Below, in pieces: positions 6,263 to 60,173 of a stretch of 64,000 bases of DNA. Position 1 is the first letter of the stretch, and each line of letters opens with the position of its first letter. The DNA is taken from positions 248,001 to 312,000 of IMG/VR virus record IMGVR_UViG_3300042923_000569, one strand, 5' to 3'. The position numbers and the translations under genes were made by a program. The notes below the pieces were generated by a model that worked only from the letters and a program-made list of their open reading frames with translations, was not told the DNA's origin and did not search any database.

Positions 6263-6810
6263 TATAACAGTTCCTCATCTTTCATTTCTTCAAGGTACTT
6301 AATTACTTCAGGGTCATTTGAATGGTGTAGTACGCAGCCTAGATCTAGATCATCGCTATATTTTTTAACAAAATCCAAATCAATTGATTGTACATTTTCA
6401 ACATAGAAAAGGCGTATAAGGTTTTTCTCAGCTAGTGCGTTCAAATGTTCTTTTGAAGTACTCTCTGGTAGATATTCAAGTATTACGGATTTTTCAATTG
6501 CAATATCCATAATTTTATTCATCAAATCGTCGGAACTAACACCCAACTTATTTGATAGTAAAACAATATACTCATCATTATTAAGTCGATTAATTATAAA
6601 AGCATTAAAAATAGTGTGTAATACTTTACTTCCTGCAATGTCAACAAGTTTAACATACTTTTGTGCATCTTCAAATCCATGATTGAAAGACGTATATACA
6701 ATATCACTACCATAAAGTAATTCTACATTATCAGCACCATAGGTTTCAATGGCAGCAATAATTTCATCAAGACTACTGGTACTTGTTGACTCAACTACTT
6801 TGATATTCAT
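6262..6810 (-). CDS. hypothetical protein
   Basis: QSIDLDFVKKYSDDLD repeat unit shared with neighbours. Confidence 0.75.
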   Translation of the reverse strand: MNIKVVESTSTSSLDEIIAAIETYGADNVELLYGSDIVYTSFNHGFEDAQKYVKLVDIAGSKVLHTIFNAFIINRLNNDEYIVLLSNKLGVSSDDLMNKIMDIAIEKSVILEYLPESTSKEHLNALAEKNLIRLFYVENVQSIDLDFVKKYSDDLDLGCVLHHSNDPEVIKYLEEMKDEELL

Positions 6811-6872
6811 TTTTGTTCCTTTGTTATCTAAATTAAAAAGCCGAACTTAGTTCGGCATTATAAAGTACTTAA

Positions 6873-8003
6873 TTAGCTCTCAGTATGTTCACGAGACATA
6901 AACCGGCCAGTTGCAGGATCACGTGGTGGCATCTTGGCGGCCCGTTCCTGTTTTAGTCGTTCACGTTCTGCTTGTTGTTGTAGACGTTCTGTATGTTCTT
7001 GTTCACGTGCAACAGCTAATTCAGGATTAGCAGCATATGTTTCTTCAACAACGCGATTGAATTGTTCTGGATTTAAAACATCCATAAACTCTTCCTGGAA
7101 CGTAGCATTTGCTTCATCTACACTTACACCCGTTACTGAACTATAATCATTAACATCAATTTCTTTTAGATTATAAGTTAATTTTCGTTCTGCACGTTGT
7201 ACTTGACGTTCAGTGTTATTAACTGCACGTTCTTTCAACCAATCAACGTAACCATTGGCATTCATACGTGGATGTTTCTTGTAAAGTACTAACAAGTCAT
7301 TCCATGTTGGATAACCTTCTGGATCGTTATTAACACGACGATACTTACGTAACCAGATTGAATATGAACGTTGACCATCACCACACGGATCGCCGCTCAT
7401 CACACGCTGTTCATTCATAACGGTATAGAGGTTTTCTGGTGGAGTGATACCAATTCGTTCACAATCTTCAATAGTTGCATATTCAAGAACATCAGAGTTT
7501 TCTAAGTATTCTCGGAACGCATCGTTATAGTTATAGAACTCTTGATATGATTCAACACCTTTATTACGTGCAAAGTGATCAAAGAAATTATCAACATCCA
7601 TAATAGTTGAATTTTCATCTAAGAACTTTGGCGTGATACAATGCTGATGTTCTGCATAATCCATGTGAATATGCTGTTTATAATTTTCTAAAAATTCAAG
7701 CGAGTACTGTTGTTCATTATGAAACATTGAAGTTTCAATTTTAAATTCACGATTTCCGATTTTGTAGTTTGCTTCAATACAACGAATTAGAGCTTCTTCG
7801 TTAATATAATATAGTATATTACTTAAATTAATCCATGAAGCAAGAACATCAGGTGCTGCAACAAACAGACGATTTAATAAAACTTTGTTTGATAACTCAT
7901 CTTGGTAATCTTCAGATTCTTCAAGATAACGCCAAGCAACAATTTTTAATTCAGCTAAGCTAAGATCAAGTAAGCTGGTTTTATCTGAAATACGAGTAAG
8001 CAT
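6873..8003 (-). CDS. hypothetical protein, DPCxxGxR paralog family
   Basis: SGDPCGDGQRSYSIW motif; coiled-coil tail ending PPRDPATGRF. Confidence 0.8.
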   Translation of the reverse strand: MLTRISDKTSLLDLSLAELKIVAWRYLEESEDYQDELSNKVLLNRLFVAAPDVLASWINLSNILYYINEEALIRCIEANYKIGNREFKIETSMFHNEQQYSLEFLENYKQHIHMDYAEHQHCITPKFLDENSTIMDVDNFFDHFARNKGVESYQEFYNYNDAFREYLENSDVLEYATIEDCERIGITPPENLYTVMNEQRVMSGDPCGDGQRSYSIWLRKYRRVNNDPEGYPTWNDLLVLYKKHPRMNANGYVDWLKERAVNNTERQVQRAERKLTYNLKEIDVNDYSSVTGVSVDEANATFQEEFMDVLNPEQFNRVVEETYAANPELAVAREQEHTERLQQQAERERLKQERAAKMPPRDPATGRFMSREHTES

Positions 8004-8803
8004 TATAGAGCCTCAAGTTCACTAAGCATTAAGTTTAAAATAATATCATCGAACCACACGCGTGCCACGGCATAAACACCGCAAGTTTTCGCATCGGCTA
8101 CATATTCTTCCCAATTAGAATAACTTGTTTTGTTATTATTTCGATAGTAATTTACCATATCACGTGTACTATGACTAGCCATACTGCGATTATTATCATA
8201 ATCAGCAGCTAGTACTTCAGCGTTAATAGTACGCATATAATAACGATCCATTACTTCAATGATTGATTTTCCATTAATAATTGAATAAATCTGTTTAAAC
8301 ACATTCAATACACTATCCCGGGCAGTATCATAACGTACAAAGGATGAAATACGGTCACGATCTTTAGTAAGATCAATAAAGTTCAATACATCGCCACGTT
8401 CAGCCCTGATACCTAGAAATGCACTTACATCCATACTATCACGGTACAAATCAAAGAATTCTTTATCGATATTCCTCTGATTTTCAATATGATATAAAGG
8501 AAGTTTTGAAGCATGGTCTTTCAATACTTGAGCAGGGATATTATAATTATGATGGATGATTGAAGTATTAACACTTTTAGAATTAATAAAAATCTTAGTA
8601 ATTTGTTCAGGAGTTAATGAGAAGTTATTAATAATACGGTCTTGTAAACGCTGAGACAAATCACCTTCTAACATACGCTCAAACAATTCTTTATCAGATA
8701 GAATGTTACGTAATTCGTCACGATCTACTTGGTCAAAACAGAAAGAATTAATATTCTCTGAATTAATTTCAGATGGTTCAGCCCTTAAATGAATCTTACC
8801 CAT
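8003..8803 (-). CDS. hypothetical protein (helical repeat, related to neighbours)
   Basis: NQRNIDKEFFDLYRDSMDV resembles HQHCITPKFLDENSTIMDV of 6873-8003. Confidence 0.8.
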   Translation of the reverse strand: MGKIHLRAEPSEINSENINSFCFDQVDRDELRNILSDKELFERMLEGDLSQRLQDRIINNFSLTPEQITKIFINSKSVNTSIIHHNYNIPAQVLKDHASKLPLYHIENQRNIDKEFFDLYRDSMDVSAFLGIRAERGDVLNFIDLTKDRDRISSFVRYDTARDSVLNVFKQIYSIINGKSIIEVMDRYYMRTINAEVLAADYDNNRSMASHSTRDMVNYYRNNNKTSYSNWEEYVADAKTCGVYAVARVWFDDIILNLMLSELEAL

Positions 8804-8829
8804 TTAAATTATTACCTTAAAGTTATGGT

Positions 8830-9465
8830 TAAAAGAATGCTACTCGCCTTGCTTACGCAAGTCAATGATTTTGTTCTCTGCGAGAATCAAAATCTACTTT
8901 AATAATTATTCTGTTATTAAAAGAACCTTTAATATCAAAACACTTATGAAAGTACTTCATAACTTACCTATCTTATACTGACAAGATTTGTAGAGGCAAT
9001 TTCATCCCCCACAAGGGGAACGAATCTGACAATGATAGTCGTCGGTATATTGTATTGAGAATTACTTTTCAGTACAGAAGCGGGTTGTTCGGTATTCTTC
9101 TTATCTCAGTTCTAACAACGGTCGAGGTCTTAGCTCTCTAAGTGCCAGGTCTATACAATCAAACCCAGCACCTGAATAGTCATAAAATTTGGACGCAACT
9201 ATACTGTACAAATTTCGATGCTATTCTCCCTTATACTATTTGGTAAGGTGCATCCTTATATGTCTATCGAGGAAGTACTGTTAAGTATTAGATGTACTTC
9301 TTTATAGTGCCGCATTGCCGAGGGAGGTACAAACTATGCCTTCACCTATCGGGTTTCTTCTGCACTTCGTACTGCTTGAACTACTCATCTATCAATTACA
9401 TTTTCATTGAAGTAGGAACAAAACATTAGGGGCATTACGCCCCTATCAAACAGAGTTTTATTATC
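8830..9465 (-). ncRNA. candidate large (~600 nt) structured non-coding RNA
   Basis: No ORF >=60 aa; many hairpins (GTGCTGGGTTT/AGACCTGGCAC, TTCGTTCCCC-TTGT-GGGGGATGAA, CTTGC-GTAA-GCAAG); directly downstream of the stable-RNA promoter motif at 9474. Confidence 0.55.
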
Positions 9466-9473
9466 ACAGGTAC

Positions 9474-9503
9474 ATTATACCACATTAATCGAAGTCGTTT
9501 CAA
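9474..9503 (-). promoter_or_regulatory. WTGAAAC-type phage promoter
   Basis: TTGAAACG...TGTGGTATAAT, 18-nt spacer. Confidence 0.75.
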
Positions 9504-9528
9504 AAAATGTGTAGATTGTATAGTACCC

Positions 9529-9801
9529 TTAAAGTTTACCGAATGACGCCCATTCAGAGTTAGTCATAACACCGACTACACCTTTGTCATTAACGAAAAT
9601 GATAGTATCACCCGACCAATCTACGCCATGCTGAGTACTTGGTTTTTTGTTAGTACTATAAACTGCAACTAAGTTAGCACTGAATAAATTATTGAAAAAT
9701 TCACGCAGTGCAGTACTTTTCTTGAACTCTTCTGTATTGTAGATGAATTCAATAATGTCGTTGTAGTTCTCTGACAGGTTCAAATCAGAAAGAGCTTCCA
9801 T
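9529..9801 (-). CDS. hypothetical protein
   Basis: ORF in packed run. Confidence 0.7.
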   Translation of the reverse strand: MEALSDLNLSENYNDIIEFIYNTEEFKKSTALREFFNNLFSANLVAVYSTNKKPSTQHGVDWSGDTIIFVNDKGVVGVMTNSEWASFGKL

Positions 9802-10049
9802 TAGTAGATACCTTCCAGTTTAACAATAATATTATCAATACCAGGTTTAACCAGGTACAGAGGATCTTTTACCATATCCCAAAACCTTACAGCTTTGGAG
9901 AGAAATGCTTTACCCGTAACTTCAGTACCGTCAGGTAATGTCAGCGTGTAATCGATGTTACGTAACTGTTGAGGTTGGGTACAAGTAACTTTCTTACCAA
10001 CAACATGATTAGTATCTTCATCAACTACTGCATACATATAGATAGTCAT
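9801..10049 (-). CDS. hypothetical protein
   Basis: Start reassigned to MTIYMY (AAGGG SD, avoids overlap). Confidence 0.7.
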   Translation of the reverse strand: MTIYMYAVVDEDTNHVVGKKVTCTQPQQLRNIDYTLTLPDGTEVTGKAFLSKAVRFWDMVKDPLYLVKPGIDNIIVKLEGIY

Positions 10050-10059
10050 GATTGCACCC

Positions 10060-10596
10060 TTACAGTACTTCGACTTTAGTAATTTCGTCGGATAGGTAGT
10101 AACGAGTATCGTTAACAACAGTGAAGCGATAGTTATTACCACGACCTTGTTCCCAATCGAGTGTGACATTAACAATGTCACCCGATTTAGTTTCCACTTT
10201 GAAACTATCATCGTAGCTTGGGTTGTTGTACAGAGAATCCGCCGCACCCTCATTACCGCCAAAATCTTTCATTTTGATAGTCACTTCAGTTTCATTGTTT
10301 TCCAGCATAACTACTGGAGTTTGCGGGAGTGAAGTTTGCTGCAATACATATTTGATTGCATCTTCAACCGAACCGTTAATTTCAGTTTCTTTACCAGATT
10401 CAATATTTGTTACCAGTATCGAAAACGGACCAACTGGATAGATGTTACGAGAGGGCCAACATGCACCAGTACTGATAGAGATTTCATATCCCATAAAATC
10501 AAACTGGCAGCACGCATTAATCTTTTCGCCATAATTGGTATCGAAGTTCAATCCGAAAATAGTGAATCCTTGAAAATTCTTATCTGAAATCGTCAT
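10060..10596 (-). CDS. hypothetical protein
   Basis: N-terminal half paralogous to 10615-10887 (KNFQGF...ACCQF.F.G.EISIS). Confidence 0.75.
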   Translation of the reverse strand: MTISDKNFQGFTIFGLNFDTNYGEKINACCQFDFMGYEISISTGACWPSRNIYPVGPFSILVTNIESGKETEINGSVEDAIKYVLQQTSLPQTPVVMLENNETEVTIKMKDFGGNEGAADSLYNNPSYDDSFKVETKSGDIVNVTLDWEQGRGNNYRFTVVNDTRYYLSDEITKVEVL

Positions 10597-10614
10597 TTTG
10601 TTTCTCACTTAAAA

Positions 10615-10887
10615 TTAGGCTGTTTGATTAATAACATAATCAATTGCGTTTTCTACTGTTCCACTGATGTATTTGATTTTACCAGATACTGTGTTAATTA
10701 CCCTTATTGTTTCAGGTCCAATATTATATACAGCTTGATTTGGATGTTCCGCAGTCGGACTGATGGAAATTTCATGGCCCCTGAAAATAAATTGACAGCA
10801 GGCGATTGTATTTTGACCGAAGTCATCAATAAAATCAAGTCCAACAACGGCAAAGCCCTGATAGTTCTTTTTGGTCAATGGTTCCAT
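10615..10887 (-). CDS. hypothetical protein
   Basis: Paralog of 10060-10596; start reassigned to MEPLTK. Confidence 0.75.
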   Translation of the reverse strand: MEPLTKKNYQGFAVVGLDFIDDFGQNTIACCQFIFRGHEISISPTAEHPNQAVYNIGPETIRVINTVSGKIKYISGTVENAIDYVINQTA

Positions 10888-10926
10888 TTTATTCTCAATT
10901 AAAAGTAATGTTGTTTCGGTAGGAGT

Positions 10927-10960
10927 ACTATAGCAAAAAGGGCTGACCGAAGTCAACCCT
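10927..10960 (-). promoter_or_regulatory. fused terminator / sigma70-type promoter, copy 3
   Basis: GGGTTGAC-TTCG-GTCAGCCC-TTTTT; TG-C-TATAGT. Confidence 0.8.
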
Positions 10961-10975
10961 TATTTTAAATTCTTT

Positions 10976-11308
10976 TTATTTGTTGGCGTAATAATTAAAC
11001 AAAATATTGATAGCCTGGTTGTCAGCATCTACCTGCCGCTGAATACGCTCTTTCTCCATATGTTCTTTCGCAAGTTCATACAATTTACGAACAGTATCAG
11101 TACGAATATAACGAATTATATCACCGTTACCAAGTATTGATGGTGTTGGGTTATCACCACGAATATCAATTACGACTTCAACCGCCCGGTAACGGTTTTT
11201 AATTACAACACAGTTATGGTCGCGACCAACATCTGTTTTCACCGAAAAATCTTCTGGATGTTTTTCAAAAAGTTCCAGGAACTTATCACCGGCTTCAAAC
11301 TGTTCCAT
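10976..11308 (-). CDS. hypothetical protein
   Basis: ORF with SD. Confidence 0.7.
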   Translation of the reverse strand: MEQFEAGDKFLELFEKHPEDFSVKTDVGRDHNCVVIKNRYRAVEVVIDIRGDNPTPSILGNGDIIRYIRTDTVRKLYELAKEHMEKERIQRQVDADNQAINILFNYYANK

Positions 11309-11318
11309 TACAATACCC

Positions 11319-11918
11319 TTATTTTAATGCGTACAAGTGGAAAAGGAATACGTGTTCAATACCTTCTTCATCATAAAGGTATTCATGTTGAATATCGTGA
11401 GTACCGATATACTCACCCCACTTATGCCACCGCCAGCCGCCATCTTCGGGCTGATGTTTTTTAAAGATTGGTGCCATAACTAAAACGTACTTGTTATCGG
11501 TGGATTCAATGAACGGGTACTTTTGCAGTACTTGTTCGTAGTTATCACATACACCATAACCATCGAAAAGGTTGATGCCATCTTTCATCATCTGAAGTGT
11601 TTTATCCCGGTCAGCAGTGTATTCACCCGTAACTGGATTGAACATACCATAACCACGATCTAATAGTTCGTTCGTAGTATTATCCTGGATAGTGTATTCG
11701 AAGTTCAGCGAACTGACCAAATACACACCAGTACTTTCCTGCAAAATATGATCAATTGCAGTAGGTTCGGTATAGCTACTTTTCCAAAATTCATGATTAT
11801 GGTCACAAGTACCAATGATAGTAATCATTTCTGGATTGGTTGCATCATGTTCTTTGACGTAGTTAACACCATTGTCTGAATTAAAAGTACTCATATCGAA
11901 ATCTAAATTAACAAGCAT
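11319..11918 (-). CDS. conserved phage hypothetical protein (GGWRWHKWGxYIG motif)
   Basis: Motif recalled from large-phage hypothetical proteins. Confidence 0.8.
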   Translation of the reverse strand: MLVNLDFDMSTFNSDNGVNYVKEHDATNPEMITIIGTCDHNHEFWKSSYTEPTAIDHILQESTGVYLVSSLNFEYTIQDNTTNELLDRGYGMFNPVTGEYTADRDKTLQMMKDGINLFDGYGVCDNYEQVLQKYPFIESTDNKYVLVMAPIFKKHQPEDGGWRWHKWGEYIGTHDIQHEYLYDEEGIEHVFLFHLYALK

Positions 11919-14819: not shown

Positions 14820-15014
14820 TTCAAAATCTCACTTAAAATTCATCTCGATTAAAAGGTGGCGGGGTTTCCCCCGCCGGGTCTGGCATTCATTGCTTCAACC
14901 GTTACGCATATGCTCTCACCACCGAACTGATGATAACATAGTACTTCGTAGTAAATCAAGAACTTTGTTGAATGAGTTCGGTTCATTCTAAAAGGTACTG
15001 TTTCTCATTCCACC

Positions 15015-15497
15015 TATAAATGGTGTGGGGTATCTACGCTATACCACAAGTACCAGTTTGAAACGTTACGCGGCCTACGTCTACCGCACCAGATAAAGTA
15101 TCTGGAAAGTTTTTCGCTAACTTCATCCTGCTTAACCTATGGTATCGCAAGTCAACGTTTCTACTCCTAGATTACTCACATATTACTATGTCAGCAACAG
15201 TACTGAAACATCAATCCGGTTTCCCCCAGCCCCAGCTCTAACTCGGACTACGCGATTGACATAACCAATGTTCCAGTATACTTCTTTCAATTACCATTAC
15301 TTTGAATGGCGAAGTCAGACATGAGCGGCTTCTACGATATTTGTAGCGGGAATAAGCTACCCCGCATCAATCTCCACCTGTACAGTACAATTACTTTAGT
15401 ACTAATACGTGCTCACTGCAATATGTCTCATTTATAGTGTGAATCTAATTCGCGGTTATTGCCAAAGTGCCGCGAACCAATCACTTTTCGCCTAGAT
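15015..15497 (-). ncRNA. candidate large (~480 nt) structured non-coding RNA
   Basis: No ORF; GC-richer than flanks; hairpins TTCGCGG/CCGCGAA, GCGGG/CCCGC, CCAGATA/TATCTGG, long-range GAAACGTT/AACGTTTC. Confidence 0.5.
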
Positions 15498-15669
15498 TTA
15501 TATGATTAATTTATAATTTAAGTTTTACATTTGCGTAAAGCCCTCATCTTTATTAAACACTACACTTTTCAGTGCATCCAAGAACAATCTTGCTTTAGAG
15601 ACTCTATTATGCTTTCTTTCGAAGTAGAAGTCAAGCATAATTTTCATTTATTTTTCGAATCTTTAAAGT

Positions 15670-24910: not shown

Positions 24911-24940
24911 ATTATACCAGATTTTTTCGTTTCGTTTCAT
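24911..24940 (-). promoter_or_regulatory. WTGAAAC-type phage promoter
   Basis: ATGAAACG...CTGGTATAAT upstream of tRNA-fMet. Confidence 0.75.
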
Positions 24941-45725: not shown

Positions 45726-45731
45726 AAATTG

Positions 45732-45803
45732 CGTTCCCACGGAGACTTGAACTCCGGTTCCATGCGTGAAAGGCATGTGTCCTAACCACTAGACGATGGG
45801 AAC
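45732..45803 (-). tRNA. tRNA-Glu(UUC)
   Basis: CATGC-CTTTCAC-GCATG; G73. Confidence 0.93.
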
Positions 45804-45974
45804 AGTTTTACTACTTCAATGTCCACTCTTTACTTTTCTCTGTATCTTTCGATACTTCAAAGTTAATAGATTCCATTACTTCAGACAGATTGTTGTTCGC
45901 AATCCCATCCAAAATTTTTCTAAGGATTTTAATGTTTTCTTCCGATGACATATTTATTCCTAAATTAAAAGGCT

Positions 45975-46092
45975 GAAATCTTTTCTATACGGTCATCCAG
46001 ACACAGCCTAAAAAGCAACATGGCTGCTGGGGGATCGAACCCCACCGTTTTTCATAGCAGGAAAAAAGTTTTTATGTTTGCTGTAAGATTTC
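45975..46092 (-). ncRNA. GAAUC/CAGCAA-module RNA H (permuted tRNA mimic, Ser GCU loop)
   Basis: GAAATC-TT-ACAGCAAACA...TTTTTC-CTGCTAT-GAAAAA, T-arm TGGGG-TTCGATC-CCCA, acceptor hairpin GCAGCC/GGCTGT, D-arm GTC-TGGAT-GAC...GATTTC. Confidence 0.8.
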
Positions 46093-46105
46093 GATATTGC
46101 TTCGT

Positions 46106-46212
46106 GCAGCGACAAGGATTTGAACCTACGTGATATTAAGAGAAACCTTCTCTACTTAATTCATTACCAGTGATCGATTTACTAATGAATCGCGTCAATC
46201 ACCATCCCGCTA
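46106..46212 (-). ncRNA. tRNA-like RNA with enlarged anticodon and variable arms
   Basis: Acceptor TAGCGG/TCGCTG, T-loop AGG-TTCAAAT-CCT, arms TTCATTA/TAATGAA and AGAGAA/TTCTCT. Confidence 0.5.
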
Positions 46213-46223
46213 AACTTACTTAT

Positions 46224-46253
46224 ATTATACCACAATTTTTTCTACCGTTTCAT
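46224..46253 (-). promoter_or_regulatory. WTGAAAC-type phage promoter
   Basis: ATGAAACG...TGTGGTATAAT at the head of the 45.0-46.2 kb RNA cluster. Confidence 0.78.
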
Positions 46254-46926
46254 ATTTTTTCAAAGTATTTCGAAAAGATACACCATCACCTGTATAACTT
46301 TGTGGAAGTAATGGATTTTGAGTATTGTTCATATCATCAATCATAATAGGAACAAATGAAATACGAACAAATGTACGGACTTTGTTAGTACTTTCAACTG
46401 GACGACGATGAAGTACATAAGGATCTAAACAATAAAGTACATTCTCTTTGCATACACGAACTTCTTCAGAAATATTATCCTGTAAGAAGTAATTAACATT
46501 GTGTACTTTAGGATAAAAGTCATCAGGGAACTTAACAGAAACATTGGTGTATTCTGTTGGAATACGATTAGACCAAATATAATTTTGTTCAGGTACATGT
46601 GAGACTTTAGTACTGAAACCATCTACATGCCATTCATCATCTGTTACTGATTTAACGTAACCATGTCGAACGGTAATATAACAGTACTTTTTATCTACAT
46701 TAACTACATTCTGTTGATGAGTTAATGCTTCAATTAGTAATGATTTCATCCATTGTAGTTCATCAGGAATATGAAGAGTTTCACCATCTTCACTGATACA
46801 CATACGTAAAATATACTGAGTACCATAAGGACATTTAACTTCAATCTTAGATAACTCAATTGGTTCAACATTGTTCTCAAATTCTGCTACAGAAACTAAA
46901 CGCTTTGCACGATCAATGATACGCAT
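46225..46926 (-). CDS. putative 2OG-Fe(II) dioxygenase-like protein
   Basis: WHVDGF (HxD)...VLHRRP (distal H)...RTFVRISF. Confidence 0.55.
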   Translation of the reverse strand: MRIIDRAKRLVSVAEFENNVEPIELSKIEVKCPYGTQYILRMCISEDGETLHIPDELQWMKSLLIEALTHQQNVVNVDKKYCYITVRHGYVKSVTDDEWHVDGFSTKVSHVPEQNYIWSNRIPTEYTNVSVKFPDDFYPKVHNVNYFLQDNISEEVRVCKENVLYCLDPYVLHRRPVESTNKVRTFVRISFVPIMIDDMNNTQNPLLPQSYTGDGVSFRNTLKKYETVEKIVV

Positions 46927-51389: not shown

Positions 51390-51513
51390 TGGCGGCGAGT
51401 ACTGGATTCGAACCAGTGACCAGGACATTAAAAGTGTATGAGTTATGGTTGCTGCGGGAATCCAATCAGGATTCCTTGGGTTCTACCTGCTCTACCAACT
51501 GAGCTAACTCGCC
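51390..51513 (-). ncRNA. tRNA-Lys(UUU) interrupted by a 48-nt GAAUC/CAGCAA module (RNA I)
   Basis: Removing 51438-51485 gives a 76-nt cloverleaf with GGACA-CTTTTAA-TGTCC and CCA. Confidence 0.88.
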
Positions 51514-60098: not shown

Positions 60099-60173
60099 TG
60101 GTGCCCCTGACAGGATTCGAACCCGCGAATCACGGTTTTAGGGACCGCTGTTCTACCATAGAACGGCAGGGGC
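60099..60173 (-). tRNA. amber suppressor-like tRNA (CUA)
   Basis: GCGGT-CCCTAAA-ACCGT; full cloverleaf and CCA; C8 and C33 are non-canonical. Confidence 0.75.

Follow-up and report, generated by a model that had tools for sequence, protein, structure and literature searches.

A predicted structured RNA of unknown function with five diverged copies in the genome of a jumbo phage

We analysed a 64,000-nucleotide stretch (hereafter the window) of IMG/VR record IMGVR_UViG_3300042923_000569, positions 248,001 to 312,000, which belongs to a 358-kb jumbo phage genome. Window 8804-9528 (725 bp) lies between the minus-strand ORFs 8003-8803 and 9529-9801. It is the second-longest stretch of the window, and the third-longest of the genome, with no ORF of 60 aa or more in any frame. 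A preliminary description of this region had proposed a structured RNA of about 600 nt at 8830-9503, encoded on the minus strand, driven by the promoter type that also precedes the tRNA genes and not assignable to a known family. These four points are supported by our analysis, but the RNA is shorter (about 445 nt, 9022-9467) and has several copies, which the preliminary description could not see.

The promoter (TTGAAA-N18-TATAAT) lies on the minus strand at 9474-9503, with the -35 TTGAAAC at 9503-9497, a 17-18 nt spacer and the extended -10 TGTGGTATAAT at 9484-9474. It matches 11 of 12 consensus positions and has TG before the -10, and the predicted start is near G9467. The heptamer WTGAAAC itself is not specific, occurring 56 times in the window against 36.6 expected. 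The full motif TGAAAC-N17-TATAAT, mostly in the form TGAAAC-N13-TGGTATAAT, occurs about 33 times in the genome, always on the minus strand, and exactly 7 of these are in the window (9502, 24939, 25015, 35312, 41419, 46252 and 60222). The preliminary description stated that the six other copies all precede tRNA or tRNA-like genes. Those at 24939, 35312, 41419 and 60222 lie 44-49 nt upstream of tRNA genes, 25015 lies 76 nt upstream of the promoter at 24939, and 46252 precedes a 420-nt ORF-free stretch and then tRNA-Glu. This is the TGAAACG-type promoter class of Rak2-like phages, described for CBB and GAP32 (PMC5259590), and the motif is present in 38 of 39 copies of the RNA family described below.

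The predicted RNA gene occupies 9022-9467 on the minus strand, with both ends inferred. It is one of five paralogs (A to E, this one being copy D), which are 60-70% identical to each other and all lie on the same strand, 49-85 kb apart. The same five orthologous groups occur in GAP32, CBB, BF and fHe-Yen9-04. Munch, XaC1 and Hallingskeid also have five copies, 121Q and EJP2 have four, and RaK2 has three. PA5oct, Atu_ph07 and XacN1 gave no match, and a strict motif found nothing in about 185,000 bacterial and archaeal genomes. Two models, R1 and R2, match the stretch in the window. The core 8973-9462 is 82-86% identical to relatives, while the adjacent genes fall below megablast level, and in a 5-kb query the RNA is the only long segment that relatives match at that level besides a ~40-nt promoter cassette. 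The nearest tRNA gene is about 15 kb away, and the other four copies are not next to tRNAs.

Hairpins and a GNRA loop are present on the minus strand as had been noted, with a GAAA tetraloop at 9070-9067 in P8 and a GUAAU loop in hairpin Ha. However, folding of this sequence alone is barely better than chance (z = -1.8 for the minus strand and -1.1 for the plus strand), and neither proves structure nor picks the strand. The proof of structure is covariation. RNAalifold on the full 687-column alignment and a dynamic-programming fold of our own both gave poor or unbalanced structures and were replaced by domain-wise alignments with hand-curated helices. A pair score that allowed both G·T and A·C was of no use, because any purine-pyrimidine column pair scores well. 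In the final analysis about 19 helices, including two pseudoknots, are supported by compensatory changes. In the 5' domain 88.9% of cells were paired against 70.4% in shuffles, with 234 double-change cells against 79.7 and a covariation score of 0.471 against 0.153. The 3' part gave 88.1% against 74.6% and 0.440 against 0.198. In both cases 0 of 500 shuffles reached the score, and controls with the partner column slid by 1-3 positions scored 0.12 or less.

In the 5' domain (9301-9453), H1 (9453-9446 with 9379-9372) closes a three-way junction with hairpins Ha (9445-9427) and Hb (9415-9389, with loop GAAAAUGUA). The junction AUGAGUAGU is followed by H2 (9366-9362 with 9310-9306), H3 (9352-9349 with 9321-9318) and H4 (9341-9339 with 9327-9325), the last with the conserved loop CAUAGUUUGUA. 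H1, H2 and H3 are 99-100% paired. The Hb stem covaries as Watson-Crick pairs, against a box C/D-like kink-turn at this place. Hairpin Hc (9272-9300; GAAGUAC/GUACUUC) differs in sequence in every paralog but its pairing is kept, with 19 Watson-Crick pair types summed over its 6 pairs. The middle section (9174-9258) consists of hairpin Hd (9258-9244), the invariant UAAGGGAG (9233-9226) and helix He (9226-9174). An SD-like role for UAAGGGAG with a small ORF was not supported, as no start codon is conserved. He carries a module, M, with a stem of 9215-9209 with 9191-9185 and a conserved 17-nt loop. Module M sits here in types A, C and D but inside P8 in types B and E, and it occurs nowhere else in the genome.

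Hairpin P5 (9140-9173) has four G·U pairs in this copy. Its loop AUUGUAU (9159-9153) pairs with AUACAAU (9055-9049) to form pseudoknot PK2, and the pairing covaries as UUCAUGU/ACAUGAA, GUCGAAU/AUUCGAC, CUGAAUU/AAUUCAG and UUCGCAU/AUGCGAA. The 3' core (9056-9138) contains P6 (9138-9124), S1 (9119-9115 with 9088-9084), S2 (9101-9097 with 9080-9076), P7 (9108-9104 with 9060-9056) and P8 (9074-9063, with the GAAA loop). S1 interleaves with S2 and also crosses P7, its 5' strand lying outside P7 and its 3' strand inside, and the result is an H-type pseudoknot. S1, P7 and S2 are each 100% paired. S1 shows GUUGU/ACAAC, GUUGC/GCAAC, GUUGA/UCAAC, GUUGG/CCAAC and GUUAC/GUAAC, and position 3 of S2 switches between G·U and A-U.

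In the six best-aligned helices (H1, H2, H3, S1, P7 and S2), 41 of the 42 non-Watson-Crick cells are G·U and 1 is other, which fits RNA of the minus strand. Only well-aligned helices were used because a pooled wobble count over the whole 5' model (83 G·U against 61 A·C) was blurred by mis-registered Hb pairs. Plus-strand RNA was rejected by this asymmetry together with the promoter and the terminators.

Terminal hairpin Pt (9043-9028) is followed by AGAUUC, and 9022-9043 is the likely 3' end in this copy, but it is weak as a terminator. Most paralogs end in an intrinsic terminator. Paralogs A and E carry a separate strong hairpin followed by a U6-7 run about 10-30 nt after the CGUCAGA motif, while in B that motif is itself the 5' arm of the terminator hairpin. 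GenBank annotators of phages Munch and UE-S1 also marked terminators on this strand beside the element. Window 8830-9021, included in the region first proposed, is not part of the folded RNA. Just downstream of the RNA, at 9005-9019, lies the hairpin CCCC-UUGU-GGGG with a G-run (five G in this copy, six in nearly all others) that is conserved in all paralogs. It is followed at 8972-8991 by the conserved block ACAAATCTTGTCAG and TATAAG (8977-8972), which is near-invariant across paralogs and may be a second promoter (P2) or a protein-binding site. This block is also kept in copy A, which has no co-oriented gene downstream. Window 8804-8971 is the AT-rich leader and promoter region of gene 8003-8803 (GC about 0.30) and is not conserved among paralogs or relatives.

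Known families and coding functions gave no account of the element. Searches against Rfam 15 with cmscan found no match at gathering score in the window, none at E up to 10 on 8700-9650, and none at E up to 5 on the four other paralogs, which covers ROOL, GOLLD, tmRNA, RNase P RNA and the intron and ribozyme models. ARAGORN reported 26 tRNAs and no tmRNA in the window, none of them in this region. No ORF is conserved, and the longest ORFs (31-85 aa) differ in strand and position among copies, although GenBank annotators called small ORFs here in GAP32, Kaldavass and Hallingskeid and records also give a 'repeat_region' at these sites. The RNA is not mentioned in the papers searched on these phages.

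Three RNA libraries hold contigs on the 5' domain, at 9297-9457 (depth 44), 9299-9494 and 9312-9545, and paralog-type contigs are also present. Depth is 0 over 6800-8970 and 9640-9970 in all three libraries, and further out there are only short or low-depth patches (10123-10264 in one library, the promoter cassette at 10929-10966, and 11401-11607). These contigs carry no strand, cover only the 5' domain and reach upstream of the predicted start, so they do not define the transcript ends or the size of the stable species.

Taken together, the stretch 9022-9467 is best explained as a free-standing gene for a ~445-nt non-coding RNA of a family without a match in Rfam 15, of which these Rak2-like jumbo phages carry three to five diverged copies. 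We give this reading a probability of about 0.6. The RNA has two domains, a three-way junction followed by a long irregular arm and a core with two pseudoknots. Copy A is flanked by opposite-strand genes on both sides, and the genes downstream of the other copies share no family, so the RNA is not a leader of a downstream gene. We infer that it works as a stable folded RNA, most likely by binding a phage or host protein or by assembling with itself, and that it is expressed in the same temporal class as the phage tRNAs. The invariant junction and loop nucleotides and the two alternative sites of module M point to a compact three-dimensional fold. However, a purely trans-acting RNA does not explain why five diverged copies are each conserved and spaced 49-94 kb apart in most five-copy genomes (with one 34-kb gap in XaC1), nor the invariant G-run hairpin and sequence block downstream of every copy. 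Terminator-like hairpins very early in the transcript of B, C and D types are also unexplained.

The spacing raises the possibility, which we consider unlikely, that the copies are position-bound replication origins, where the transcript would prime or license leading-strand synthesis as appears to occur at T4 oriF/oriG or with ColE1 RNA II, and the fold and G-run would control where a persistent RNA-DNA hybrid forms. The probability of so large a minimum gap is 0.0001-0.07 per genome, and Hallingskeid shows 65-79 kb, but the genomes are syntenic and the values amount to one observation noticed after the fact. All copies lie on the strand that carries most genes, so forks would run with transcription, the promoter class also precedes DNA-synthesis genes in CBB, and the G-run and block follow every copy. 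On the other hand, strong intrinsic terminators lie between the RNA and the G-run in three or four paralog groups, GC skew follows gene orientation only and shows no turn at any copy, known R-loop origins need no 445-nt RNA with pseudoknots, and copies can be lost, as in 121Q, EJP2 and RaK2. About equally doubtful is action in cis on the transcribing RNA polymerase, like HK022 put RNA, with the modules as re-loading stations for long co-directional transcription units. The order of promoter, RNA element, terminator and genes seems typical of processive antitermination (lambda PR'-qut-tR', HK022 PL-putL), four of five copies sit between co-oriented genes, terminators lie within or just after the element, and the spacing is even. 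Copy A and the unrelated downstream genes speak against it, as do the size of the RNA, several times larger and more elaborate than known antiterminator RNAs, and the about 28 further promoters of the same class that have no such RNA.

A remnant or working copy of a mobile or catalytic RNA, such as an intron-like element or a self-cleaving ribozyme, would explain the multiple dispersed copies, the fold is ornate, with pseudoknots, and homing-endonuclease genes lie within a few kb of some copies. However, besides the lack of an Rfam intron or ribozyme match, the copies are intergenic with their own promoters, their positions are conserved across genera with no sign of recent movement, and no element-borne ORF is conserved, so we regard this as very unlikely. 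Least likely is a DNA-level repeat (protein-binding sites or structures in single-stranded DNA) or a set of tiny ORFs. Conserved sequence blocks and the annotated small ORFs are in its favour, but the compensatory changes show that pairing of one strand is selected, and the G·U asymmetry, promoter, terminators and RNA-library contigs agree with a minus-strand RNA. The five co-oriented, evenly spaced genes may be landmarks of the 350-kb phage chromosome, with the RNA acting at its own locus, either to license or prime five origins or as a re-loading point for terminator-resistant transcription, and with the G-run hairpin and invariant block as its DNA partner. This is improbable on present evidence but is not excluded, and an elaborately folded RNA organising replication or transcription of a viral genome by position would be new.

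Large, elaborately folded bacterial and phage RNAs are rare, and to our knowledge only about a dozen classes above 300 nt are known (among them OLE, GOLLD, ROOL and HEARO), each of which has opened new biology or remains a long-standing puzzle. The present RNA occurs in cultured, widely studied phages of E. coli, Klebsiella, Cronobacter, Pectobacterium, Erwinia, Serratia, Yersinia and Salmonella. Its five diverged paralogs per genome, modules that swap position between helices and near-even spacing around the genome are not described for other large RNAs.

Among known systems, ColE1 RNA II and the T4 oriF/oriG transcripts may share with it a promoter-driven transcript whose fold or 3' region could set up a primer and a G-run near the end, but here terminators lie before the G-run, no skew signal is seen and the fold is far more elaborate. 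HK022 put RNA probably resembles it in lying directly downstream of a promoter and upstream of terminators and long co-directional gene arrays, but the present RNA is about six times larger, one copy has no co-oriented downstream genes and there is no homology. Pseudomonas jumbo phage PA5oct, a distant relative of the Rak2-like phages, has four ORF-free transcribed regions (ncRNA001-004) of 236-619 nt, dispersed and all on one strand, two of which make up 2-5% of phage reads (PMC7318152). Neither R1 nor R2 finds a match anywhere in PA5oct, no structure has been described for those RNAs, and homology is not shown. ROOL (RF03087) and GOLLD (RF01998), cited in the preliminary description as being of this size class, are analogies of size and setting only, without homology. 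Like them, the present RNA is a large (over 400 nt), multi-helix, phage-encoded RNA with pseudoknots and of unknown function. It has a promoter of the class that precedes the tRNA genes, in a genome region rich in tRNAs, but whether it shares with them a location next to tRNA genes is open. It differs in having no sequence or structure match to either model and in its three to five diverged copies per genome, in lytic jumbo phages of enterobacteria.

Positions 8804-9528 of the window lie between two minus-strand ORFs, 8003-8803 and 9529-9801. This is the second-longest stretch of the window, and the third-longest of the genome, with no ORF of 60 aa or more in any frame. Another stretch with no ORF of 60 aa or more and no tRNA, 539 nt long, was found at 14992-15530. 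The virus record is 357,873 bp in length (the window being bases 248001-312000) and belongs to the Rak2-like jumbo phages, which include GAP32, CBB, Serratia phage BF, the Erwinia pEa_SNUABM phages and Yersinia fHe-Yen9-04. A search with Rfam 15 gave 27 tRNA matches in the window and nothing in the stretch 8804-9528, and a permissive search (E up to 10) also gave nothing credible. No tmRNA was found by ARAGORN. Two of the tRNAs called by Rfam, at 51393-51513 and 60102-60173, were not listed by ARAGORN. The first of these spans 121 nt, far longer than a normal tRNA, so it may hold an intron or insertion.

The preliminary description had placed a WTGAAAC promoter in front of this stretch and reported that its six other copies all precede tRNA or tRNA-like genes. 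The bare heptamer is not specific, as it occurs 56 times in the window against 36.6 expected, but the full motif is. TGAAAC-N17-TATAAT, mostly in the form TGAAAC-N13-TGGTATAAT, occurs about 33 times in the genome and always on the minus strand. Exactly seven copies lie in the window, at 9502, 24939, 25015, 35312, 41419, 46252 and 60222, which correspond to the site of the preliminary description and its six other copies. Four of the six lie 44-49 nt upstream of tRNA genes, one lies 76 nt upstream of another promoter of the class, and one precedes a 420-nt ORF-free stretch followed by tRNA-Glu. The site at 9503-9474 matches 11 of 12 consensus positions and has a TG extension. This promoter class (TGAAACG at -35 with a TATA-type -10) has been described for CBB and GAP32, where many copies precede DNA-synthesis genes (PMC5259590). 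Relatives encode a sigma-70-family sigma factor, whose gene in 121Q and UE-S1 lies just upstream of one RNA copy, and this factor might read the promoter class. The 420-nt stretch (within 45804-46260) lies between the minus-strand promoter at 46252 and tRNA-Glu (45731-45803). Its promoter-proximal ~290 nt are 77-78% identical in fHe-Yen9-04, BF and the Erwinia phages, where they are unannotated, and it may be a further non-coding RNA or a long tRNA leader.

The core of the element, 8973-9462, is 82-86% identical to relatives that infect other genera, and in a 5-kb query it is the only long segment these relatives match at megablast level. The element occurs five times in its own genome, always on the same strand: copy A at 63956-64548, copy B at 148632-149234, copy C at 208073-208616, copy D (the one studied here) at 256955-257502 and copy E at 338055-338652 in genome coordinates. 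The paralogs are 60-70% identical to each other. Across GAP32, CBB, BF, fHe-Yen9-04 and three metagenomic jumbo-phage contigs they sort into five orthologous groups, and the five-copy state is therefore old. In total, 39 distinct copies were collected.

Aligned paralogs showed conserved blocks separated by hairpins, whose sequences differ while their pairing is kept. We split the RNA into two domains, aligned each with MAFFT, wrote the helices by hand from the covariation and built covariance models R1 and R2. In the 5' domain (38 distinct sequences, 35 pairs), 88.9% of cells formed standard pairs compared with 70.4% in shuffles, 234 cells had changes on both sides compared with 79.7, and the covariation score was 0.471 compared with 0.153, with 0 of 500 shuffles reaching it. 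In the 3' domain (35 sequences and 47 pairs, two pseudoknotted helices included), the corresponding values were 88.1% against 74.6%, 238 against 73.9 and 0.440 against 0.198, again with 0 of 500 shuffles reaching the score. When the partner was slid by 1-3 columns the score fell to 0.083 or less in the 5' domain and to 0.119 or less in the 3' domain. Some pairs are striking. Helix S1 occurs as GUUGU/ACAAC, GUUGC/GCAAC, GUUGA/UCAAC, GUUGG/CCAAC and GUUAC/GUAAC. The loop of hairpin P5 pairs with a stretch about 100 nt downstream, and this pairing occurs as AUUGUAU/AUACAAU, UUCAUGU/ACAUGAA, GUCGAAU/AUUCGAC, CUGAAUU/AAUUCAG and UUCGCAU/AUGCGAA. Folding this one sequence alone was only marginally better than shuffles (z = -1.8), and the evidence for structure is comparative.

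In the model for this copy, helix H1 of the 5' domain closes a three-way junction that holds hairpins Ha and Hb and the junction AUGAGUAGU, and H2, H3 and H4 then form a long arm with conserved internal loops. The middle section has hairpins Hc and Hd, the invariant UAAGGGAG, and helix He, which carries module M. The 3' domain has P5, P6, the H-type pseudoknot S1/S2, P7, P8 with a GAAA loop, pseudoknot PK2 and the terminal hairpin Pt. Two features suggest a compact three-dimensional fold. Module M, a stem with a conserved 17-nt loop, sits in He in types A, C and D but in P8 in types B and E, and it occurs nowhere else in the genome. The tip of H4 exists in a short and a long form, and these are shuffled among the paralog groups.

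Watson-Crick covariation cannot tell the strands apart, but wobble pairs can. In the six helices that align without register problems (H1, H2, H3, S1, P7 and S2), the non-Watson-Crick cells are 41 G·U and 1 other when read on the minus strand, and on the plus strand these would be C·A mismatches. They arise in several columns and lineages, for example at H1 positions 4 and 8, P7 position 2, and S2 position 3, where G·U alternates with A-U. P5 of this copy alone has four G·U pairs. The promoter is on this strand, and so are the terminators. Types A and E have a separate strong hairpin followed by a U6-7 run after the 3' domain, while in type B the conserved CGUCAGA is the 5' arm of the terminator hairpin. 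Terminators on this strand beside the element were also marked by the GenBank annotators of phages Munch and UE-S1. Terminator-like hairpins with U-runs sit very early in the transcript as well. In this copy it is hairpin Ha (9427-9445), and in B and C types (genome copies B, ~149.2 kb, and C, ~208.6 kb) a GC-rich hairpin with U6 starts within about 7 nt of the -10. This may be attenuation, or termination of read-through from upstream genes.

The longest ORFs in the 39 copies are 31-85 aa and differ in strand and position. The GenBank records JN882285 (GAP32), PQ464595 (Kaldavass), PQ464590 (Hallingskeid) and ON568341 (UE-S1) annotate small 'hypothetical protein' genes or a 'repeat_region' on top of the RNA copies, and these are probably mis-annotations. 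In CBB, four copies lie in 650-750-bp unannotated gaps between co-oriented genes, and the downstream genes share no family. The fifth copy (type A) lies between genes of the opposite strand, with endonuclease VII diverging from its promoter and two genes converging on its terminator. It is therefore a free-standing gene.

Contigs of three RNA libraries and one unlabelled run were compared with window positions 6800-11800. In a metatranscriptome (X1), a wastewater RNA library (X2) and a soil metatranscriptome (X3), whole contigs lie at 9312-9545, 9297-9457 (depth 44) and 9299-9494, and further contigs carry the sequences of other paralog types. Depth is 0 over 6800-8970 and 9640-9970 in all three libraries. 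Further out there are only short or low-depth patches: a low-depth contig at 10123-10264 in X3, a short promoter cassette at 10929-10966 in X1 and X3, and pieces within 11401-11607 in X1 and X2. The unlabelled run covers the whole stretch evenly, as DNA would. At least the 5' domain therefore accumulates as RNA far above the neighbouring mRNAs, although the contigs have no direction and reach upstream of the predicted start. Their common left end near 9297-9312 may be a real 3' end, but it may equally be an assembly break at the hypervariable hairpin Hc. The cassette at 10929-10966 is a minus-strand promoter with an embedded stem-loop, TTGACT-N17-TATAGT around the hairpin AAGGGTTGAC/GTCAGCCCTT followed by a T-run, and has at least 7 copies in the genome. 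The same query drew 95-99% matches from E. coli, Klebsiella and Aeromonas phages, which most likely fall on this piece.

Five copies were found in each of Munch, XaC1 and Hallingskeid, four in 121Q and in EJP2, three in RaK2, and none in PA5oct, Atu_ph07 or XacN1. Within each record, all copies are on one strand. A strict 24-base motif of the 5' domain found 41 sites in IMG/VR, all on contigs of, or consistent with, 350-380-kb phages, and none in one genome each of about 185,000 bacterial and archaeal species. PA5oct has four RNA-seq-defined ncRNAs of similar size (PMC7318152), to which we found no homology. The RNA is not mentioned in any paper that we could search. In the ten five-copy genomes examined, gaps between copies are mostly 49-94 kb, with one 34-kb gap in XaC1. 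For five random points on a circle, the probability of so large a minimum gap ranges from 0.0001 (Hallingskeid, gaps of 65-79 kb) to 0.07. Because the genomes are syntenic, this is close to a single observation, and it was noticed after the fact, but it is still the main fact that a purely trans-acting RNA does not explain. Also unexplained is that every copy, including A, is followed by a hairpin with a conserved G-run (six G in nearly all copies, five in this one) and then by a near-invariant block, ACAAATCTCGTCAGTA, that ends in a -10-like TATAA. A further conserved segment with a hairpin (ATTCTT...AAGAAT, then TTTTCG) is shared by copies A, B and E downstream of the -10-like block, in their left flanks at about 63.85, 148.57 and 337.98 kb of the genome, and could be a conserved 5' leader or a second small RNA.

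That this is a structured RNA gene on the minus strand is close to certain. It is promoter-driven, terminated in most paralogs and free-standing, with a conserved, complex fold of the minus-strand transcript and accumulation of RNA of at least the 5' domain. We infer, with a probability of roughly 0.6, that it functions as a stable folded RNA, bound to a protein or self-assembled, in the same temporal class as the phage tRNAs and analogous in kind to ROOL and GOLLD.

The spacing, the orientation and the G-run would favour RNA-primed or RNA-licensed origins, but terminators lie before the G-run and the skew is flat, and this reading seems unlikely. A put-like antitermination role is about as doubtful; the layout fits four copies and fails for copy A. 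A mobile or catalytic RNA is less likely again, as there was no intron or ribozyme match and the positions are stable, while a DNA-only repeat or a set of tiny ORFs is contradicted by the covariation, the G·U asymmetry and the RNA contigs and is the remotest possibility.

Searches with the Rfam models gave no match of this RNA to ROOL, GOLLD, tmRNA, RNase P RNA or introns. It does belong to the described TGAAACG promoter class. We regard it as a new class among the large structured phage RNAs of unknown function, from which it differs in its three to five diverged, position-conserved paralogs, in modules that change place, and in near-even spacing around the genome.
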